64,000 nt of DNA from Auanema rhodensis (taxonomy: Eukaryota > Animalia > Nematoda), in NCBI GenBank assembly GCA_964057225.1, contig OZ059898.1:4588001-4652000 (forward strand), in the 5' to 3' direction. Numbering within the stretch: the stretch's first letter is position 1; every line of letters begins with the position of its first letter. Made by a program: the position numbers and the translations under genes. The notes below the pieces were generated by a model. It made no database searches. It worked only from the letters and a program-made list of their open reading frames with translations, and was not told the DNA's origin. Below are positions 1 through 14,600 of the stretch, one piece after another.

Positions 1-3000
1 GAGCACAACACCTTCTACGACCACCAGCACAACGTCTACGACGACTCCATTTACGACAACCAGCACAACGTCTACGACAACTCCATCAACGACAACGAGC
101 ACAACGTCTACGACAACTCCATCAACGACCACGAGCACATCGTCTACGACAACTCCATCAACGACAACAAGCACAACATCTACGACGACTCCATCTACGA
201 CAACGAGCACAACACCATCAACGACAACGAGCACAACGTCAACGACAACACCTTCTACGACCACCAGCACAACGTCTACGACGACTCCATCTACGACAAC
301 GAGCACAACTCCATCAACGACAACCAGCACAACGTCTACAACGACTCCATCAACGACGACAAGCACAACACCATCTACGACCACCAGCACAACGTCTACG
401 ACAACACCTTCTACGACCACCAGCACAACGTCTACGACGACTCCATCTACGACAACAAGCACAACTCCATCAACGACAACCAGCACAACGTCTACAACGA
501 CTCCATCTACGACAACAAGCACAACACCATCTACGACCACCAGCACAACGTCTACGACCACTCCATCTACGACAACAAGCACAACTTCATCAACGACAAC
601 CAGCACAACGTCTACAACGACTCCATCAACGACGACAAGCACAACACCATCAACGACAACGAGCACAACGTCTACGACAACTCCATCAACGACCACCAGC
701 ACAACGTCTACGACCACTCCATCTACGACCACCAGCACAACACCATCAACGACAACGAGCACAACGTCTACGACAACTCCATCTACGACAACCAGCACAA
801 CGTCTACAACGACTCCATCTACGACCACCAGCACAACGTCTACAACGACTCCATCTACGACCACCAGCACAACGTCTACAACGACTCCATCTACGACCAC
901 CAGCACAACGTCTACGACAACTACTTCCACGACGACAAGCAGGACGACTTTATCGACACCATCTTCAGCATTGTTTACAACAACAGAATACCATGAAGAT
1001 GTATCAACTACCCCTAGTATGTTCAGAAATAGTTTTTTTCATTTATCAAATAGTTGTTTGAATACGTTTACATTATTATAGGAAGTGATTGCTGTCCATC
1101 CGGAGGGCTATGGTCAGAATGGACAACTAGTATGAACTGTTCTGATACATGTGGATCGTGTGCACAACGTTATTATACAAGAACATGCCTTTCTGATAGC
1201 TTAACATGTCCTTGCACGTAAGAACTTCAAGAATTGTGCTCACAGTTATTTCTCATTCTAGTGGTGTATCAGGAAAATGGAAGAATTGTAATATTAATAT
1301 ATGTTATTATCCGCGTTTAACATGTTGCAATGGATATAAATTAACCGTTATTAATGGTAAACATACATGTGGACCTCAGGTTATCAAAGTTTGAAATTGA
1401 TCAAGTTTTTCTTGAATTTCAGCCAACGGAAGATGAAGGTAATGATATGGAGAGTTGTTGTCCATTAAATGGTTATTGGGCTCCATGGAAGGAATGGAGT
1501 GCGTGTACTGGTGGAGATTGTGGCAGAGTATTCATAATCAATCAGAGTTTCTTTCATTCAATAATTTCTTTTGCAGTGTGGTAAAGCTGTGCGTTCACGT
1601 ATATGCTTATCTACCTCATACAACTGCCCATGTCAAGGTGATGCAACTGAAGAACGTACTTGCCGTACATTGGCTACATGGTCCAATTGGAAAGTATGTT
1701 TAGCGTGTTCATCTAACTGCCAAACTCATTTTATTTGTTTCTAGGAATCAGAAGCTTGTCCTTCTGGATCATGTGGATCATGCCATATGAGAACATTGAC
1801 ACGAACTTGTAATAAAGAAAATGGGTGTGCATGCCTGTAAGTGAAAATGATGTGTTTCTTTTTCAATTTTTCTGAATTTTTCAAGCGGTTCCTCAGAAAA
1901 ACAAGAAATATGTAATCCTGCACCATGTAGTGGCAATGCTACGACAAACAGTACATACGAATGTTGTAAAGATTTTAATATAACTGTAATAGATGGTTTC
2001 AGAACATGTGGGCCATTGGTATATTATACTTCATTATTTGTTTTTTATATATAAATATTATAGATTACACCTCAATCTGATCCTGAATTGGCTATGTGTG
2101 GAGAAGCAAATCCAGATTGTTGTGTAATTGGTGGAGTATGGACTGAATGGTCTTCTGGAGATTCTTGCTCTGATACATGTGGTTTTTGTGGAAATACAAC
2201 AAGAACACGCTACTGCATTTCAGAAGATTGGAATTGTCCATGCAGGTAGAACAGAGCTGTATATCAAATATAATTTCAAATTTTCATATAATTTAGTGGC
2301 CCATCAACAAAAGTGGGAGAATGTAATTCAGCTATATGTTTATTCCCACGTCCATCATGTTGTGGCAACCGCAAAAAAGTTATTATCAATAATTATCCCC
2401 AATGCTCACCAGCTGTAAGTTTGTTTGTTTTTTGTTTGAATTGATAATTTTGAATAATTTGATAGGATGATACTGATCCCCTACCATCAGACCTATGTTG
2501 GACAGGATGTTGTCCAGCTGCTGGAGGATATTGGTCTGAATGGTCATCAGGCACAGCCTGTTCGGATACTTGTGGATCATGCGGCAAAACAAATCAATAT
2601 AGAACATGCTTGACAGAGCAGTATAACTGCTCATGTAGGTACGTAAACTTATTGCTCTTTTCTAATTAAATTACTAATTTTACTTATTTCAAGAGGAGCT
2701 TCTACTCGTGAAATCAATTGTAACATTGGAGTATGCTATTATCCAAGATTAACATGCTGTGAGCCCTACACTAATGCTGTAATTAATGGAAAACATGCTT
2801 GTGGACCCCAGGTTTATCATATATATTTTAATTTTTAAAATATATTTATATATTTAAGCCTAATTATACAACAGTATATTCACCATATGATCCATATTGT
2901 AATATAACATGTTGTCCACAAAATGGTTTATGGTCAGAATGGATAAGTACACCAAATCAATGTTCTGATTACTGTGGATCATGTGGTAATATAACCAAAA

Positions 3001-4446
3001 CAAGAACATGCCTATCAGAATCAGATGGGTGTCCATGCATGTAAATATTATTTTTATTTTAATTAAATAATATTAATTATTTATATTTTAGTGGACATTC
3101 TCAAGAGATCAGTCAATGTAATACAGGTGTATGTTATTATCCTCGATTATCATGTTGTCCAGGATATTCAGCAATGGTGATCGATGGAGTTCATTCATGT
3201 GGGCCATTAGTAAGTTTCATTTTAAAGATAATTAACTATATAAAATATGATTAAAGCCAAAGAAACTGGAAATAGAGCCATATATAAACAGTTGTGGAGT
3301 TAGCTGTTGTCCAACAGATGGTAATTTTATTTATAAATAAATAAATATTTATTTAATTATTAAAATAATAAGGTATATGGGGTGAATGGACAGTTAAAAT
3401 ACCATGTAATGATACATGTGGAGCTTGTGGAATAGAAGTTCGAACACGTAAATGTTTATCATTACAATATGGATGTGATTGCACGTTAGTATAATATTTT
3501 ATTATTTATTATTATTAATAATAATATATAATTTAAGTGGAGATAATACTATAAATGAAATATGTGCAATTGAAATATGCTTATTCCCTAAACCATCTTG
3601 CTGTCCTGGTTATACTAAAGTATAAAATTGTTTTTATTTGTAATTTACTCATTTTTTTATTTAGAAACTCGACACTGTTAATAGAGTATTTACATGTGGA
3701 CCACTACCGGTTACAAAAAAAATTGACCCTCAGCCAACAACTTGTTGTGATCCAGGTTTTGCTCTACATTATTCGATTTTAATCCAATGGTATTAATTTC
3801 AGAAGGAAATGGTTTATGGAACGAATGGAAGCCTTGGACTACATGTACAGCATCTTGTGGATTGTGTGGAACACAGACTAGAAACAGAACTTGTGCATCT
3901 GAAGCTTACGGTTGTCCCTGCGTGTAAGTAAAAATCATATTTAATTTAAAATTCATATATTTTATTTGAAATTTTTTTATTTTAGCGGTAAAAAGATTGA
4001 ATCAATGCCATGTGGAAAGCCTATATGTTCTTCTGGTGCAAAATGTTGTGGATCTTATCATGTAGATATAGGATATGATGGCATAGAATTCTGTCAAATT
4101 AATCCAGTAAATTATAAAAATAATTATATATAATATTAATAAAATTGAAGCCATCAACATGTGTTGGCACTTGGACAACATGGGAATCTCATACTGGAGC
4201 TGTATGTAATGATACTTGTGGACTCTGTGGTGCAATACCTCAATATCGTTATTGTTGGCCATCGGGATGTAAATGCAGGTAATAATATATATTTATTTAA
4301 TCATTTATATATGATAATAATAATAATTTAGTGGACCATTTCAACAACATTCACCATGTGCTGAAATAATTTGTACATCCCCTAGACTATCTTGTTGCCC
4401 TCCATATACAAGGAAAGTTGTTAATAAGAAGATAGTATGCGCTTAA
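1..4446 (+). CDS. Mucin-like (Ser/Thr-rich) protein with 9 C-terminal thrombospondin type-1 (TSP1) repeats; 5' end lies outside the window
   Basis: The frame starting at nt 2 reads STTPSTTTSTTSTTTP... to 1016 and splices (gt 1017, ag 1081) into RSDCCPSGGLWSEWTTSMNCSDTCGSCAQRYYTRTC. The WxxW...CxxxCGxC...R.R.C motif recurs near 1090, 1455, 1675/1745, 2118, 2508, 2909, 3305, 3742 and 4160, across many short introns. Stop TAA at 4444-4446. Confidence 0.9.
2..940 (+). repeat. Coding minisatellite of interspersed 36-bp (STTSTTTPSTTT) and 24-bp (STTPSTTT) units
   Basis: Repeated agcacaacgtctacgacNactccatcWacgacMacS units; much more GC-rich than the flanking DNA. Confidence 0.95.
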
Positions 4447-5187
4447 AGAATGAAGCTAGTTTAGCAAAATCTAAGCGAGACCAATTTAACATAATTTTCT
4501 CAAATAATAGAAGCTTAGATGCTTCTTCGTTTAATAAAATACTACGTGTATATTTAGTTTTTCCACAAAACAAATGAAATTTTTATTTTATTTAATTAAA
4601 AATAAAAACAATACTAACAAAAATAATAATACTAATAATAATATTAATAATAATAATAAAATCATTGACGATAAATAAACAATTATTTTAAAAAAATTTT
4701 ATTTTAAGACAAATTAATAATAATAAAGAAATAAAAGAATATTATCATATATTATAATTTTAAAGTTTCAAAAAAAAAAACATTTTGTGATGGTCATCAT
4801 CATTTAAAGACTAAAATAAATGAACACTTCTATGACAATGTTTCGTGTCAATTATCTTTTTTTTTAAATGAAGTGGATGAACAAATAATATTTATATTCA
4901 TTATTCAAGTATTTGGTAATTATCAGCGTTAAACGAATCTGAAGTACAGCGAACATAGCTGAACATGATGTGCACGTTTCCAATGATGTTCATAGAATTT
5001 AAATCATTCACCAAAATAAACAAATAGACTTTAACACAAAAAAAAATTTGGTCAATGGGTACCTACTCAAATTTGAAAAGGACATACATAGAGTTCTCAA
5101 TTCAGTTCGTTTAGAGTTGCTTCAGGTGTCTGGTGATTATCGTTCTTCGCAGATCATCTATCTAAATCGTTGTTCTTCAAGACAATC

Positions 5188-6377
5188 ATGCTGTTCAGAG
5201 TTATCGTGCTTCTTTTCGCTATATTTCATCTCATCGGTATATTTCGCTTTTCCTTTTTTTCTAATTAATTGAACAATAATTTAATGGGAAAAAAATCGCC
5301 GGATATACTAATATTACAATGTGTTTCTATAAATATCAAATTATATTCATTTTTATCATGAAATATCATTGAACTTCGATTGATAGATCAAAGTGTTATG
5401 GACGATTCACTTTGAAATTGCTGTCAGTGAATATAAGAAGAGTATAATATATGAATATAATTATATAACTATATATAAATATAATCACATATATATATAT
5501 ATATATATATAATTAATATATATATATATATTATCGATTAATTATTTTTAATATTTATAGAAGGAGGATGTTATCCATCTGGTTCACGTTGTGTACCTGA
5601 GCGTCCATTTCAAACAGCTATAGCTTGGAATTCTTGTCAACAGTACTGTAATAAGTGTAAAGGAGTAACTGTAGGAGATTGTGAACGTGTCTTTACACCA
5701 TTATGTGATGGAAAATATCAGTGCAAGTCAGTCTATATCATTAATTTTCTAAAATATTTTGAGTTTTTTCTGCAACAAAATTGATAAAATTCTGATTAAA
5801 ATGAGGATAACGAAAGACTAACTATATACAAATAATAATGAAAATGCTATATTTTTAAATAAACAAATAAAGTTTGTTTGAGTGAGTGAATGAAAGAGTA
5901 AGATAGTAAATAGTAAAAAAAAAACTTTAAAAGTGAAACATATCTTCATTAAAGAAATTTGAAATGTACACATATTTATACATATATATATATATATATA
6001 TATATATTATGATTATTTAAAATATATTATTAATTATATTTTTCAATAAAAGAATATAATAACTTAAGAAAATTCTTATTTACATATATATATATATATG
6101 TATATTGTACTCTAAACAAACTATATAAAGTTTATATATACTTAAGTATTAAAAAAAACTAAAAATACAATAAAATTGATAACTTTGCAAATGGAAATTT
6201 GTTATTTTATTCTTCTTCAAATTTCCTCATTGTATATATTACTATTAATAATAATACCAATAAATATATTTTCTTTTTATATATTTTGTAAAAAAAATAT
6301 GTTTTAGATGTTCCGGAGAAAAAATTCCCGTAAGCGCTAATATCATTGAACGAGCAACTTGTCAATTAGGCGTTTGA
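5188..6377 (+). CDS. Secreted macin-family (theromacin-like) cysteine-rich peptide, 94-aa precursor
   Basis: Exons 5188-5236, 5561-5726 and 6308-6377 join in frame (285 nt): MLFRVIVLLFAIFHLIEG/GCYPSGSRCVPERPFQTAIAWNSCQQYCNKCKGVTVGDCERVFTPLCDGKYQCKCSGEKIPVSANIIERATCQLGV*. It has a hydrophobic signal peptide and 10 Cys with theromacin-like spacing (GC...SRC...W.xC..YC..C...G.C...C...QC.C...TC). Confidence 0.85.
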
Positions 6378-6677
6378 TTATATTGTTTTGATAATGTTAT
6401 TGATATTGTTTATTTATTTATTTATAAATTATAATTATAAAAATAAATTATTGTTATTTTTTAAATTTATTTTTAAGATATATATATATCTCTCTTTAAA
6501 GCATAATAGATATAGGGAAACAGCACTTTTCGCTTTTTCTGAAAAAAAAATCAAGTTAGCTATGATAGTTGTCACAGATGTCACAATTGTCTTATTCTAT
6601 TTATAGAACTTTTGTCTTATAATTTGATAATTTCTGTCTGATATTTTCTTCAATTGGAACAGACAAAATACCATTCC

Positions 6678-6680
<3 letters not shown>

Positions 6681-6742
<62 letters not shown>
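6681..6742. repeat. (CT)n microsatellite
   Basis: About 30 uninterrupted CT units. Confidence 0.95.
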
Positions 6743-6746
<4 letters not shown>

Positions 6747-8169
6747 TTTATTATACTGATTAGAATGTTTTTTTTTTGAAAATTTTGATATTGTACCAGG
6801 AAACTCTATTAAGACTTGATTTCAATTATTCAATTAAACAATTGTCTTAATTTATATTTTAAATGTTTCACTATTATTAAGTTGTAAAATAATGTTTTTA
6901 AAGTATGAAAAGTTCATTTCTCAGTGTTTCCGTCATGAATTGAACCAAACTAACTGGTTTCAAATGTTTCACTTAAAAAGTTAATTATAACTTGATATAT
7001 TTCATGAAATATAATTCAAATAACATTACAATATACATTTTTCCTCGATTTCCATGTATTTAATATGAAATGAACTGAAACATTTTCTTTTAAACTTAAA
7101 AGAGATCAACAAATAATATTTTCCAGCAAATTGACATCTATAAACTTTCATTTTTAATGGAAAATGATATACTATAATAGATGAAATGTCTCATTAGATT
7201 AGATTGTTGAATAGATCCAAATGATTTTTAAAATCATTTAATGATATTGATAAAATCTTTATTTAAAATGTAAAAGATTTATAAAACATCTTTTTATTTT
7301 TATTAGAAAACATAATAAACTTTTATTTAATTCTGCAATTAGCGTTTCAAAACATATTTTTCTAAACTTAAATCATGTTCTAATACTTGTTGAGAAAACA
7401 GGCGAAGAATTGGGGAAAAGGGGGGGGGGGGTGGAGGAGTGGGGATTTCCCTTCAGTTACTACAACACTGAAATCTTTTTGTTATCCTGTTTATTGTTTT
7501 TGTTTTCTTATATATATATATCTTCCTTTTTTTTATTATTAGTATTAAAACTACTATAGTATTATAGATTTCAAGATTTATATATATATTTAAATCTTTA
7601 AATCTATGATTTCAATTCTAATAATAGAAAAAGCAAAAGAATAGATATATATTGAATAAAAGACTAAATATGATACGATAGATAATAGAAAATGAACTTT
7701 GAATTGTCTAGAAAACAATCAAAGATTTCTGACGCCTTCGTACATGCACCATATTTCTTAGTCCGGAAGAAATGAATATCATGATAACCTTAAGGTCTGT
7801 TATATTTCCACATGATCTTTACTTCTTATACTTTGATATACTAAGAACATTCTTGTGAAAAACGTAAATAATAAGTTATGAATCACATTATTATGATAAT
7901 GGCGCTTAAGATTTTATTTACATTGGTTTGGAAGAAAAAAAATTGATTCATTTCGTCGTCAATCCTACAGAATCTATGTGTGGGTGGCTGAATTCGACGA
8001 ATCATTAGTCAATCATGCAGCCTCGTCATAATATCATTTATTTCTCTCGTTATTCTGATCGCTCACAGTTTTCCGATCATTTCTTCGCAAGACTTTTAAA
8101 AGTCGAATGTCATCTCTTTCAAGTTGATTATCTTTCATTTCAATGATTTCTATGTTCTCTCTGCTTATC

Positions 8170-8200
<31 letters not shown>

Positions 8201-9057
8201 TCTCTTTCTTTTCTTTCCATTTATCTTATACCCTCATCCTTCTACTATTACTCTAACTTTTTCTATTTATCTTTTAATCTGTTTTCGTTGTTTGATGTAA
8301 TAGGATTTACAGCTGTATGTGAATGGTTCATGTGTGTGCCATCCCTCCCTCTATCTTTAAAAATCATTCTTTTCATTTTCATCTTCTTCTTTCTAAAGAT
8401 TATGTTGCTTTCAAAAATCATTCAATCAAGTTGTCTTTAACATATACACTTATTACTAATATTAATATTTCAACATTTCCATAAGCATCACCAAGTTCGC
8501 TTAAGACCAATTGCATGGCCGAGTTTTCATTATTCGAACTCTTCCGGTCCTATTATCTTTGACGCCATTTCCGGTAATCAGTTCGCCATCTGCTTTTGTG
8601 ACTCCGCCCAATTCTTGTTGGCCATCTCTGTCTATATATATATATATATATATATGTAATACATATTTGTATATATATACATATATACATATATAAACTG
8701 TCATATGCTGAATATGCTGACTCGACTCGTGCTGCACGTAAAGTACCGTAACCCTCTACGACCCCCCAACCCTATACAATTTTAATTATTACAATGAACT
8801 AGTTTCACTTTTTCTTGTGAAACTTGGACATAGACCCCCTCGTACATAATGTCAGTTTAGCTACTTATATGTCCCATTCTAACACTTTCTTCTATTGATG
8901 ATAAAACCATCCTCTTCTAAGATTAGATTATAGATCTTCATCTTTTCTTAATTAATAATGTATTTCTGTTTTCTCGTTCTTCCCATCTTCAAATTTAAAT
9001 TTAAATGATATCATATGTCTATGTTTCAGTTCTATACACCCTGGAGACTATCTGAAA

Positions 9058-11696
9058 ATGGTTGTCAGCGTACCTCCAACCCATCCTTCTGCCCCAAAAA
9101 CTTCTGAACTTCGTACAGAGTCTGGCTGCGTAATTCGCTACGTTGCTCCTGCTGGCATGAATCTACCATCTTCTACCTACGAGAATAATGTAAGTAATTT
9201 ACCTCATTTGAAACATTGAAGTCATTATAATTACTGAATATTCGCTTTTCTAGGACATCTACTTTGCTGGTAACACAGGAAAACGTCGCGTTCACGCTGA
9301 CGGTAAGTTCTTGTAGAATTTTCTGCCTACAACATGTTTGTTCTGGAAAATTCTACAGAATTTTAATCTCATTCTACCGTATACTTCAGTTTTTTAGTCT
9401 AAACACACTTTCTTAGAACGCCTGCCAGCTTATTATACACTACTTTTCTACTTTTCCTAGAATAGTAGTTAAATAGAATTGATTGTTCTAAGATCATTCT
9501 TATTTACTTGATTCTTAAACATTTCCTCAAGCGCTTTTCTCTCTTTCCTTCTTGTTTTCCGTGTTTTCTCTTACCGAAAACTATATCATGGGTTTCTATA
9601 TTATCTATAGCATCTTTAAGTGTTTGTCAACAATCTTTAAAGATTTTCTGTTGTTACACCGGTTTCTCTCATTATTCGCTTTGTGTCTTCCACTCCTCCT
9701 ATTTTCTTTTCATCCATCATTCCATCGTTTTTAACTTATCCAGACTTTGTAATCAAAAAAATCAAGAAATACAATAATATAAGAACTAGATGAAATATCT
9801 TTATTCATCACACATCTTAAAGACCAGAAGTAATGGAAATAAAATGAAAATTTGTTTGTTCTATTGATAATATTTCAAAAAATAATATTATGAAAAGAAT
9901 TTGTTCCTCCTTTTTCTAAACTATTTCATTTATTTTCATTTTTATGTTGGTCTTACCTTTGTCAATTTTTTTCATCCAAAGCATTCGAAAGAATTCACTT
10001 CTACTTTCTTTCCTCTCTCTCTATCTCTCTATCTCTCTATCTATTTCCCTTTCTCTCTGAACTTCATATCTATTTCCTTTGATATTAGTTTATTTTAAAA
10101 ATTAATTTTATTATCAGCATTTATAGATGAAGGATCCGATTCTGAACAATGGGGAAGCCTCATATGTTTGGTTCAAACAATTGATGCCATCGTTGGAATG
10201 GAAATGGAAACTCATATTTTTGTAGGCAAAAATATTTTGGAGGTAATTGATTTGAGTAATTTAAAAACAAAAAAAAATTCTTAGATTGGAGCTCCTACTG
10301 GATTAATTTCTGTCTATGCATGGCAAAATGGTGCTTCAGAATTATCAGTTCATAATATGGTTTGTTGTATTTTTCATCTATGAAAATATCTTTCTTTCTT
10401 AATCAAATAAGTTTTTTTTTTCAAAAGAAATATTTTTAGAGAAATAGTAAACTTGCAAATGAATATGATAAATGATTATAAGAATATATTTGACAGATAA
10501 CTAACTATAAATAGAATATTTTTAAGATGAAGAATAAGGTTTAAAAAATGTTGGATAGGTTTGTGTAATTAATCTTTGATCAATTTAATCATTTTTGTAT
10601 CTATTTTAAAGTTTCGTGAGGTCTTAATCTATTTAAACTCTTTTAAAATCAAATTGATTGCTTCTGCTTTTGTGTAAAGCTAATGAAACAATATTTCCTT
10701 GTTATGTTTCTATGATAGAATATTCTATTTTTCGAAATTGCTGGTTAGAAACAAGCTAAAGGTCATACATCATGTTGTTTCTAATGTGTTGTTCACGTGA
10801 AACACACAATTATCTTAGAACATTAAAACATCTTAATCTCTTAAGCTTATAATATTTCAAATGAAAATTTTAAAAAAGATTTAAATAATATTTTTCTTAC
10901 AGGATTCATCGAACTATAATTACTACACCAAATTAACTTTGCAACAGAATAATATTCCTATGAATAAGTGCAAATTCAGTAATGGTGATCTCAAGGCTCT
11001 AAAGAAAGCGTTAGGCGGGAAAAAGTAAGTTTATCCTTATTTAACTTTCAACTAGCAAGTGATTGATTAGTGAACTATTGTGTGATAATTACTAAAATTC
11101 TTTAATTTTGTAAAAATGGCCACGATTTAAGAAAAACATAAACATATTTTTATTTTCATGTTGTATATCTTGTAGGTTTGATGTAATTTTGGCTTCTGAC
11201 TGGCTAAACTGCGACAAAACTGATTTCCAGATGATTCATGATATCATTGATGAGGCCTTGGACGACAATGGCATTTGGTTTGTTTCTTTTTTCGCTTTAC
11301 AATTGCTATTTTCATTATTTCAGTCTTATTTCTACTCAATTACATTATTTTTTCCACACTGACAGCTCTTTGCCTGATTTTCTTTCCATCGTGAAGCACA
11401 ACAAGAAGCTCGATTACATTGAACGATTTTCGTCTCCACGTACGGATATCAACCAAAGAAAGGTTCGTTGATTCAATAAGATTCATTTTATTGATTAAAT
11501 TAAAATATAAACATCTTTAAAAAGACATTAAATGTCTATTTTACTTATGATGAAATAACACACCAATTTGACCTTCTTCATATAGAATAACTTTATTTTG
11601 GAAAATTGTCAGCTATTCAACTAAGACTTGTCAATCTAATAATCTAACATGATTTTACTTTTTTAGGTCATTCAATTGACGCGATCTCTTTTCTAA
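9058..11696 (+). CDS. METTL18/Hpm1-like seven-beta-strand methyltransferase-fold protein with degenerate motifs
   Basis: Eight exons: 9058-9189, 9254-9302, 10127-10242, 10285-10359, 10903-11024, 11176-11277, 11324-11462, 11667-11696. Translation includes FVGKNILEIGAPTGLISVYAWQNGASELSVHNMD, KCKFSNGD, KFDVILASDWLN and IIDEALDDNGICLISTQLHYF, collinear with the METTL18 family. A TTTCAG acceptor at 9024-9029 lies upstream of the ATG. Confidence 0.75.
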
Positions 11697-14600
11697 ACGA
11701 CGAAGACAATAATTTCAATTTGTCATATCTGTAAATACTCAAAGTCCAGATATCGTATCTTCTCTATCTCTCTCAGTACGTAGGTGTTCTTTGTATGGCA
11801 CTTTGGGCTGCATCAGCTTACTTTTTCGATGATTTCTTTATGAATTCTCTCTCACTTCACGATTCTCTATCGGTTTCCTCATTTTGAATTTTCCGTTGTC
11901 AATCTGCTTTCTGTAATATCCGATATATTATCGGCTCATTCATTTTGCAAGAGTCATAAATCATTGTAAACAATAATAATATTAATTATTGTAAAAGTAA
12001 TTTTATAGATAGTGACACTGTACCGTATCGGTAAGGTATGTCTTGTAAATTTTTAACTGGAATTTCTTTTTATAGAATTGCTTGTGTATTTGATACAGGT
12101 CTTAATTTCGACGTTTGTGCTAAGACTCAATAATAATAAATATTTTTATAATTTATACTATATTCTGTTTCTGTTTAAAGGATAATACTAAGTAATTTTA
12201 ATTCATAAATAATAATAAGAATAGAATTTAGTCGTTATCTTTTGAAAATCTAAATAAAATTGAGCCTTCATAAGCCTTCAACCAACTATTGAATATGCTA
12301 TATTTCTTTTTTCAAGCAAGAATTTCGAAATCAATATTTGTATATAACTTGTGCCATACTTTATTTTTATTTTTAATTCATCAAAGTAATATATATTTTA
12401 ATTATCTTCTTCTCAAATTATTATTTTTTGGATGGAGTCTGTTTTATGTTCATGTTAGAAACCACTGATATCAGAATAATAGCGGAAATGACCGTAGGAC
12501 TTAGTCTTATTACATCATTATTTGTAATAGATTTTTGACATTTTTACTCGAACTTTTTGAACCCACAAGTCCTAATTCTTACATTCTTACGTTCACTAAA
12601 CATTAAATGTTATATTATTTCTATATTCTTTGTACAACCATTTTTATACTGCATACCTATGTCATTTTCTTTGTTCTTGATGTTGTATTTCTCTCTGTCA
12701 GTCATCTCACTTGTTTTCAAATGCTTTCAATTAAATCGGTATAAGAACATTTCAAAGTTCGGGAAAAAATGCTTATTTCCTCCCAAATTAGCGATGTAAC
12801 GTTTACTCGTTCCAAAAATTTCCGTGCAGCATGTTATGTAGTCTAGTTGTTTACTATTGCGTCATTTTAACGTGAACATCATTATTCATCGGTTGTATAT
12901 GCTGTTTAAATATAGCTGTGAGAGTTTTTTTTATTTCGAACAAGAATTTGTTTGATGTTCCCTTATTTCATTTGGTTTATGTCTTAAAAGCTCTTCAACT
13001 TGTCTAGTTATTATGTTAGGTAAGATTGTAGTTTTTCAATATTTTTTTATCATTGCAAATTGACAATATCATGTACTATACTGATCTTGTTAACGTTCTT
13101 CTTTCATAACAAATTGTCATCTAACTGCCATTTTGTTCGTTGATTTCCTACTTTCTTTATTACATTATTTAAGATTGCTGTAGTTATGCGCATAACTGTC
13201 AAGTGAACCCAATTTGCACCCAGATCAATTTTATAGCCTATTGCCATACTTGGCCAGTCACATGTTAATCACGTGATGCCCTTCTTACTCTCGTGTCTGT
13301 GGCGTCCTGTTCTCTGTTGTACTGGCTAGGCTGACTCCCTCACCCTTTTTGCATTTCTCACATCTCTCTTTTTCTCTATTATTCTCCCTTGTTTTCTCTT
13401 CTCTATTACTTTCTATAATTCCATTTTGAATAACGTAAAACATTGTAGATATTGAAACAATGCTAGAAGATGTTTCTTTTCTCTGTTCATCAAGTATTTT
13501 TCATATATGAAAGAAATACATGGACCTTATAAGTCGATATTTCTTCGTGTAGCGAAAAAAAACAGAAACAAACTCGTGGCATTTCATGACGCGTTCAGCT
13601 AAAAATATGTCTGTGTATTCTAGCATAATGCTGTTTTTTAAGCATTTTTGCTCCATTCCTCTGTTTTGTTCATAAACTTTACTATACTATTTTTAAATCC
13701 ACAATATTAATATGTTGCAAAATCATATGTTTAGTATCAAGCAAATCTTAATAGTTTTTCAACCCTCACTTTCCAACCCTCTGCCACATCGTGTTTTGTT
13801 TGTTGTTTTGCAGGATTGCTCCTTGTTTCCTCCATCCCCGCTTCGTTATTTCTTTGTCCAACATTATATTTCTTTCTTTGGAATCGAAATGAAATTGGCA
13901 GGGAATTGCTGAAAAAGATTAAAAGAGATGACATGAAAAAGCCAGCGTAGTTTACCACATTAATTTGTACGAAGTGATTACGATGGTTTTACGTGTTTAA
14001 CTAAGATTGTCTTGCGTATTTTTTAACAGTTGTATCTTCACTTTTAAACTATGTGTTCTTACAGCTAGTTCTGTCTACACCAAAAGTTTAGAGGTCAATA
14101 TCTTGTTAAATGTGAAGAGGCATATTCTGTAAACTTTGCATGCTTAGCAAAAAAAGATTTATGAAATACTTCAAGATGTAAGCTCCAGCTATTTAGCAAC
14201 TTCTTTTTTCAATCTTTTTTAACCAGTTATATCGGTCTCGCATTTTATACCCGTCTATTACTTCTCTCATGTTTCGTTTCTTTGTTAGTTATTGACAACT
14301 TTGTTTATCAGACATATAGCTAGGAAGGCCAAAACTATTCCCTTGTTGTCTTTTTGCTTTTGTATACTTTTTGATTTCAATATGTGTTTTTTGAGTGAGA
14401 CTAATCCTTTCATGAGTTTCAATACATAGTGTTTCCATCAAAAAGTTTTCCATACTGGCAATTGAATTTTAAGTATTTTTTAATATTACTTCTATTTCAA
14501 ATTGATTTATATACTTTCTAGTGTTTTAAAACACTTTTATTGGATATCGAACGATTACAAGTTTAAAAATCGATCAAGTTTATGATACACTTATTTAGCT

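Follow-up and report, generated by a model that had tools for sequence, protein, structure and literature searches.

A small three-exon gene of the macin family in the nematode Auanema rhodensis

The window, by which we mean the whole 64-kb stretch of DNA that was analysed (contig C6, positions 4588001–4652000), carries on its forward strand a gene of three small exons spanning positions 5188–6377 (Table 1). Its structure was read straight from the sequence over an inspected interval of 4900–6700. The exons add up to 285 nt (49, 166 and 70), that is 94 codons and a stop, with GAA and AAA as the two split codons and intron phases that match across each junction. All four splice sites are canonical and the reading frame across the three exons is intact. 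GTATAT directly follows position 5236 and TTATAG directly precedes 5561, and the second intron is likewise bounded by GTCAGT directly after 5726 and TTTTAG directly before 6308. The layout and the junctions 5236/5561 and 5726/6308 had been proposed by an earlier reading of this DNA made without database searches (the sequence-only reading), and the GT..AG introns and fitting phases found here confirm it. That reading also described the gene as hidden and absent from the ORF track. None of the exons is represented by a usefully long frame in the program-made list of ORFs, and as the exons are simply too small for such a track the description is fair.

Table 1. Coordinates of the macin gene in the window, of a putative downstream signal and of the second macin gene in the genome, with the per-exon comparison to the orthologue of Auanema sp. 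JU1783
Feature	Position	Strand	Description	Comparison with JU1783 (identical residues; pN; pS)
Exon 1	5188..5236	+	49 nt; first in-frame ATG at 5188; 16 codons and first base of split GAA	Leader, 5/16; 0.367; 0.881
Intron 1	5237..5560	+	Phase 1; GT..AG; 19% GC; (TA)n microsatellite 5443-5531	
Exon 2	5561..5726	+	166 nt; leader end, probable cleavage site I-E-G / G-C, Cys 1-8, CxxxCxxC helix motif	49/54; 0.040; 0.726
Intron 2	5727..6307	+	Phase 2; GT..AG; 16% GC; (AT)n tract 5972-6007	
Exon 3	6308..6377	+	70 nt; last base of split AAA, Cys 9 (second Cys of CxC strand motif), C-terminal tail with Cys 10, TGA 6375-6377	18/22; 0.090; about 1
AATAAA hexamer	6442..6447	+	65 nt past the stop; candidate poly(A) signal	
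Macin paralogue	contig C7:~15093775-15094162 (L016 1340-1727)	+	Three exons, ten Cys	

The AATAAA hexamer is a weak candidate for a poly(A) signal, given how AT-rich the DNA is. An AG lies a few bases 5′ of the start codon both here (ttcttcaag/acaatcATG; the bases before the ATG are window 5173–5187) and in the related Auanema sp. JU1783 (cctaag/ATG, L013 5990–6000), and its position would be right for a spliced-leader acceptor. A perfect (CT)32 tract occupies window positions 6680–6743, some 300 bp 3′ of the gene. An Rfam scan over the whole 64-kb window gave zero matches. A scan of 4600–6800 for bacterial promoters and terminators returned the same counts as shuffled sequence and is in any case irrelevant to a eukaryote.

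The predicted product opens with a leader, most of it encoded by exon 1, in which Arg at position 4 is followed by a hydrophobic stretch of about 12 residues and then by I-E-G, which places small residues at −1 and −3. By inspection, these features suggest a signal peptide of about 18 residues that would be cut after I-E-G. A hydrophobic N-terminus is found in all of the relatives described below, and in a structural model of the orthologue this region has a pLDDT of ~50. The mature part that would remain is 76 residues long, starts with GC and contains 10 Cys, 9 K/R and 6 D/E, for a net charge of +3, when the counts are summed over the exon pieces. All of the counts given for it by the sequence-only reading, including a charge of about +3, were reproduced. 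Exon 2 carries G-G-C-Y-P-S-G-S-R-C and eight of the cysteines in total; the second intron splits the second strand of the predicted fold and leaves Cys 9 outside this exon.

The cysteines form the array of a macin. The defining pattern of the family is one of 8–12 Cys comprising a cysteine-stabilised alpha-beta (CS-alpha-beta) motif and an extra N-terminal Cys that makes a fourth bond (PMC5116183). Here the CxxxC and CxC of the CS-alpha-beta motif and the extra N-terminal Cys are all present, as is the further Cys pair for a fifth disulfide of theromacin type, within CQQYCNKC in exon 2 and ATC in exon 3. The two conserved sequence motifs of macins, WSRC and TGxLW, do not appear in their usual form. 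They read GSRC and TAIAW, with Gly in place of the Trp of WSRC and Ala in place of the Gly of TGxxW, and only the second Trp and the SRC are retained. The same substitutions had been pointed out before (WSRC to GSRC, GxLW to AIAW) and the reading was correct. The altered state is common to the JU1783 orthologue and, approximately, to a relative in Caenorhabditis auriculariae. Because several other nematode members vary at these positions too, the motifs are to be regarded as typical of macins rather than strictly defining. Net charge also varies among the nematode relatives, from −3 to +12.

Assignment to the family was examined with the exons singly, with the orthologue and with a profile of the relatives. 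Exon 2 alone matches Pfam Macin (PF14865) over model positions 1–40 of 60 with an E-value of 2.1e-5 and 25.4 bits, 1.6 bits short of the gathering cut-off of 27 bits; exon 3 is not long enough to give a score. Macin is the top match for exon 2 and the sole Pfam family at a meaningful E-value. The full-length orthologue from JU1783 (P0001) scores 16.9 bits against the same model, and the Auanema sub-clade is divergent, at or below the Pfam threshold for single sequences. Among sequences in the PDB, exon 2 is matched best by theromacin (2LN8, E 1.1e-4). Between the orthologue and theromacin the alignment spans Cys 1 to Cys 9 and needs a single gap of 4 residues; that with hydramacin-1 is weaker and lacks the Cys following CxxxCxx.

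An exhaustive HMMER search with the orthologue returned 34 cluster representatives at E ≤ 1e-3. Those looked up by name all belong to Rhabditina, namely C. auriculariae, Cylicocyclus nassatus (several), Ancylostoma ceylanicum, Diploscapter pachys and Pristionchus pacificus. Twenty-one nematode relatives were brought together in an alignment (A2) from which a family profile was made; the longer macin-containing models P0003, P0017, P0023 and P0025 were left out of use as they may be fused gene models. P0009, a protein of 2,671 aa with 14 matched stretches, was also kept out of the alignments, being an unrelated protein of 47-residue repeats that multiply a weak resemblance to the macin tail. 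The mature part is 76 residues long in 14 of the 21 rows of A2, ten Cys are found in 17, and 19 match Pfam Macin (best E 7.8e-14). Searched against the whole PDB, the A2 profile recovers theromacin (5.5e-12) and hydramacin-1 (1.2e-10) and nothing else. Searched in six frames against the whole 181-Mb genome (112 contigs, ~31% GC), it recovers exon 2 at 75.9 bits with an E-value of 3.2e-19, a score well outside the reach of chance. The ten cysteines of exons 2 and 3 stand in register, column for column, with the Cys columns of the 76-residue, ten-Cys relatives, and exon 3 is in register with the family tail, whose consensus is ATCxLG. The proposal of a macin with the ten-Cys layout of theromacin is thereby backed by HMM, profile and orthologue evidence, to which the fold described below can be added. 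There is very little doubt that this is a real macin-family gene, and its place within a nematode macin clade that is itself homologous to the characterised macins is, as judged from sequence, solid.

The six-frame search of the genome with Pfam Macin gave about 20 further matches at 18–19 bits. These were judged spurious; the frames that hold them are long, reaching ~2,900 aa, and are most likely repeated, retroelement-like copies. A repeat family with open frames of up to ~2,930 aa occurs at many places on contigs C3, C5, C6, C7 and C8 (e.g. L002, L007, L011), and a Cys-rich stretch within it weakly mimics Pfam Macin positions 13–51 at 18–19 bits. The repeat family is most likely retroelement-like, and it is a source of false positives for this model. 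One match, on C4 (L006), runs antisense to a CCCH zinc-finger exon and was likewise judged spurious.

The nearest protein in a set of 5.8 billion is a 94-aa ‘unnamed protein product’ from Auanema sp. JU1783, 91% identical over exon 2. In searches of that set with exon 2 (length windows of 30–94 and 44–140 aa) this orthologue was the only match, and no A. rhodensis protein or transcript-derived ORF was found. The gene had been predicted to be one that annotation would miss. This holds for A. rhodensis, from which the set contains no such protein, but not for JU1783, where an annotation pipeline called the orthologue. The JU1783 locus (L013) also has three exons, the first again of 49 nt, with identical intron positions and phases and GT..AG ends. 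The flanking genes are syntenic by blastn, with a TSP_1-containing gene on the upstream side and one further gene on the downstream side, the matching flanks being window 1–4280 and 8537–11749. The TSP_1 gene is built of internally repeated units and gives many staggered blastn matches at 65–67% identity.

Divergence between the two species was measured from per-exon Nei–Gojobori counts (Table 1). Synonymous sites are saturated, yet 67 of the 76 mature-part codons compared are identical, and pN/pS for the mature peptide is ~0.05–0.09. Of the leader, only the hydrophobic character is retained. The introns resemble those of JU1783 no better than shuffled sequence does. This is the signature expected of a functional coding gene kept by purifying selection, and the combination of saturated synonymous sites, a nearly unchanged mature peptide and introns that cannot be aligned argues strongly against a pseudogene or a chance arrangement of frames.

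The fold was approached through an AlphaFold2 model of the JU1783 orthologue, rather than of the window product, computed with the A2 alignment. The mean pLDDT is 74.6, the blocks covering residues 41–90 score 81–91 and the core scores 86–91. The model contains a helix (42–50), two strands (52–60 and 68–77) and a C-terminal helix (84–91). The CxxxC pair lies in helix 42–50 and the CxC pair in strand 68–77, which is the cysteine-stabilised alpha-beta arrangement. Foldseek places hydramacin-1 first (E 0.23), with the nematode defensin ABF-2 (rank 2), brazzein, theromacin and plant defensins close behind. An exhaustive comparison with 48,161 solved chains, independent of Foldseek, also finds hydramacin-1 best, but weakly (Z 3.4); in the VIA-align superposition 51 of 60 residues are aligned with an rmsd of 3.1 Å. 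Only nine of the 48,161 chains reach Z 2, and six of the nine are hydramacin-1, plant defensins or brazzein. Low absolute scores are to be expected of a disulfide-rich peptide of 76 residues. The modelled fold is consistent with, and supportive of, a CS-alpha-beta core without being decisive.

Exactly two loci in the genome are detectable in the six-frame search with the family profile. The second is a paralogue on contig C7 that is 49% identical to the window gene in exon 2 and 55% in exon 3. Its last intron lies at the same place as that of the window gene, but its first interrupts the mature peptide between Cys 2 and Cys 3, where the first intron of the window gene falls at the leader's end. 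The representatives nearest to it (P0010, P0020 and P0007) are different from those nearest to the window gene, and this suggests that the duplication giving rise to the pair is old. The C7 locus also shows a 327-bp tandem duplication, with 99% identity between its two 300-nt copies (L016 1625–1924 and 1952–2251). What is repeated is the final exon and 3′ end of the paralogue and, on the minus strand, the 3′ end of a convergent, cyclophilin-like gene; this could be either a recent duplication or an artefact of assembly.

Taken as a whole, the observations are in our judgement explained best by an intact, selectively maintained three-exon gene for a 94-codon precursor of a secreted, antibacterial macin of theromacin type, an explanation we hold with some confidence. 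The leader would be removed after I-E-G and the peptide secreted. It would then fold into the CS-alpha-beta core, with the CxxxC of the helix bonded to the CxC of the last strand, and would be held by three CS-alpha-beta disulfides, the fourth disulfide specific to macins and the fifth of theromacin type. Leech and Hydra macins act by aggregating bacteria and permeabilising their membranes, the ‘barnacle model’ (PMC6780910, PMC5116183). By analogy, the mildly cationic (+3) peptide would clump bacteria outside the cell and then permeabilise their membranes. We lean, by a little, towards antimicrobial defence as the main role, and the charge of only +3 and the altered WSRC and TGxxW motifs count against it.

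The same features can be read differently. The gene could be a macin whose main role lies in signalling, as a neurotrophic, wound-repair or other extracellular ligand, with the antimicrobial surface relaxed. The low charge is compatible with this, as is the loss of the WSRC Trp and the TGxxW Gly in the window gene, the JU1783 orthologue and the C. auriculariae relative alike. So is the very strong purifying selection on the mature peptide, since ligands show constraint of this degree more typically than do immune effectors, which tend to evolve fast. Leech macins do promote nerve repair (PMC6780910). Every characterised macin is nevertheless antibacterial (PMC5116183, PMC6780910), a receptor or signalling role is known for none of them, the theromacin framework is fully retained in this peptide, and other nematode relatives likewise vary at the two motifs. 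A mainly signalling role therefore seems unlikely to us, and the remaining odds go to other or mixed roles. A more particular version has the Auanema/C. auriculariae sub-clade retuned to a non-bactericidal extracellular role, either repair or neurotrophic signalling or the tolerance of a specific microbe, with the C7 paralogue keeping the defensive one. It is suggested by the loss of the Trp and the Gly under selection that is nonetheless very tight, and we regard it as improbable.

Two further explanations dispute the identity of the gene rather than its role, and we give very little credence to either. The peptide might belong to another CS-alpha-beta subfamily (ABF/ASABF, drosomycin-type or a toxin-like channel blocker) and look like a macin without being one. 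The Foldseek and VIA lists do include ABF-2, plant defensins, brazzein and scorpion toxins with similarly weak scores, and the assassin-bug toxin 1LMR appears in sequence searches at E 0.13–0.21. Against these stand the isolation of Macin among Pfam families, the profile search of the PDB that gave macins only, the match to theromacin spacing from Cys 1 to Cys 9 with its single gap, and the presence of the extra N-terminal Cys pair and the long loops that separate macins from ABFs. As for a silent relic, or small ORFs arranged by chance and making no peptide, the want of any transcript-derived or annotated A. rhodensis protein in the 5.8-billion-protein set and exons below the size of the ORF track are what it would lead one to expect. 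It fits badly with an intact frame over three exons and four canonical splice sites, with exon structure, synteny and mature-part codons kept in JU1783 despite saturated synonymous sites, and with the genome-wide profile E-value for exon 2.

A cleanly delimited and apparently unannotated macin gene, with a paralogue, is thus added to the Auanema genome, and the case confirms that a reading of raw sequence without tools can recover tiny multi-exon peptide genes. Auanema is culturable and genetically tractable, and the pair of macin genes is a reasonable entry point to the function of nematode macins.

Within the nematodes the gene is a fresh member of a family that is already catalogued. The sequence-only reading had supposed a lineage-restricted effector, and this novelty does not stand. 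Nematode macins were reported by Gerdol 2012, as cited in a 2023 survey (Irvine et al., PMC10506718), which places them in clades 6/C and 9/V and, in clade 9/V, in all species examined except Caenorhabditis, Dictyocaulus viviparus and Angiostrongylus. A macin in a clade V nematode outside Caenorhabditis is, biologically, an expected family member. According to the survey, which makes no mention of Auanema, nematode macins resemble theromacin in having ten cysteines, and the function of none had been characterised (PMC10506718). The window gene shares with them the ten-Cys array, a mature part of 76 residues and a clade V (Rhabditina) host, and its leader is a probable signal peptide like theirs. 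It falls inside their set, at 91% identity over exon 2 to JU1783 and 60% to the C. auriculariae protein, with relatives in Cylicocyclus, Ancylostoma, Diploscapter and Pristionchus. The Auanema sub-clade is set apart by GSRC and TAIAW where most nematode members have WSRC and TGxxW. The C. auriculariae protein (P0002, CAD6187876.1) is itself a ten-Cys macin. Its presence in a genus in which the survey found none among the species it covered suggests that macins may have been lost within Caenorhabditis rather than at its base.

Among characterised peptides, theromacin (Theromyzon tessulatum/Hirudo medicinalis; 2LN8), which is antibacterial and promotes nerve repair, is the best sequence match in the PDB. 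The two peptides have in common the ten Cys, including the fifth-disulfide pair, the GC start and an identical spacing from Cys 1 to Cys 7. Their identity is only ~30%, the window peptide has 4 residues fewer in the loop from Cys 7 to Cys 8, the alignment extends to Cys 9 and leaves the C-terminal tail beyond it unaligned, and the Trp of WSRC is Gly in the window peptide. Hydramacin-1 (Hydra; 2K35) comes closest in structure to the orthologue's model and has in common with the window peptide the positions of the fourth macin disulfide and, as predicted, the CS-alpha-beta core. It differs from the window peptide in having eight Cys, with neither the fifth pair nor the C-terminal tail, and is much more cationic. 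The ABF/ASABF defensins (C. elegans ABF-2, 5IX5) are, as is predicted for the window peptide, secreted nematode CS-alpha-beta peptides. They differ from it in their Cys, which number eight and form another array, and in lacking the N-terminal extension of macins, and Pfam searches with exon 2 and the orthologue and the profile search of the PDB gave no sequence-level match to these families.
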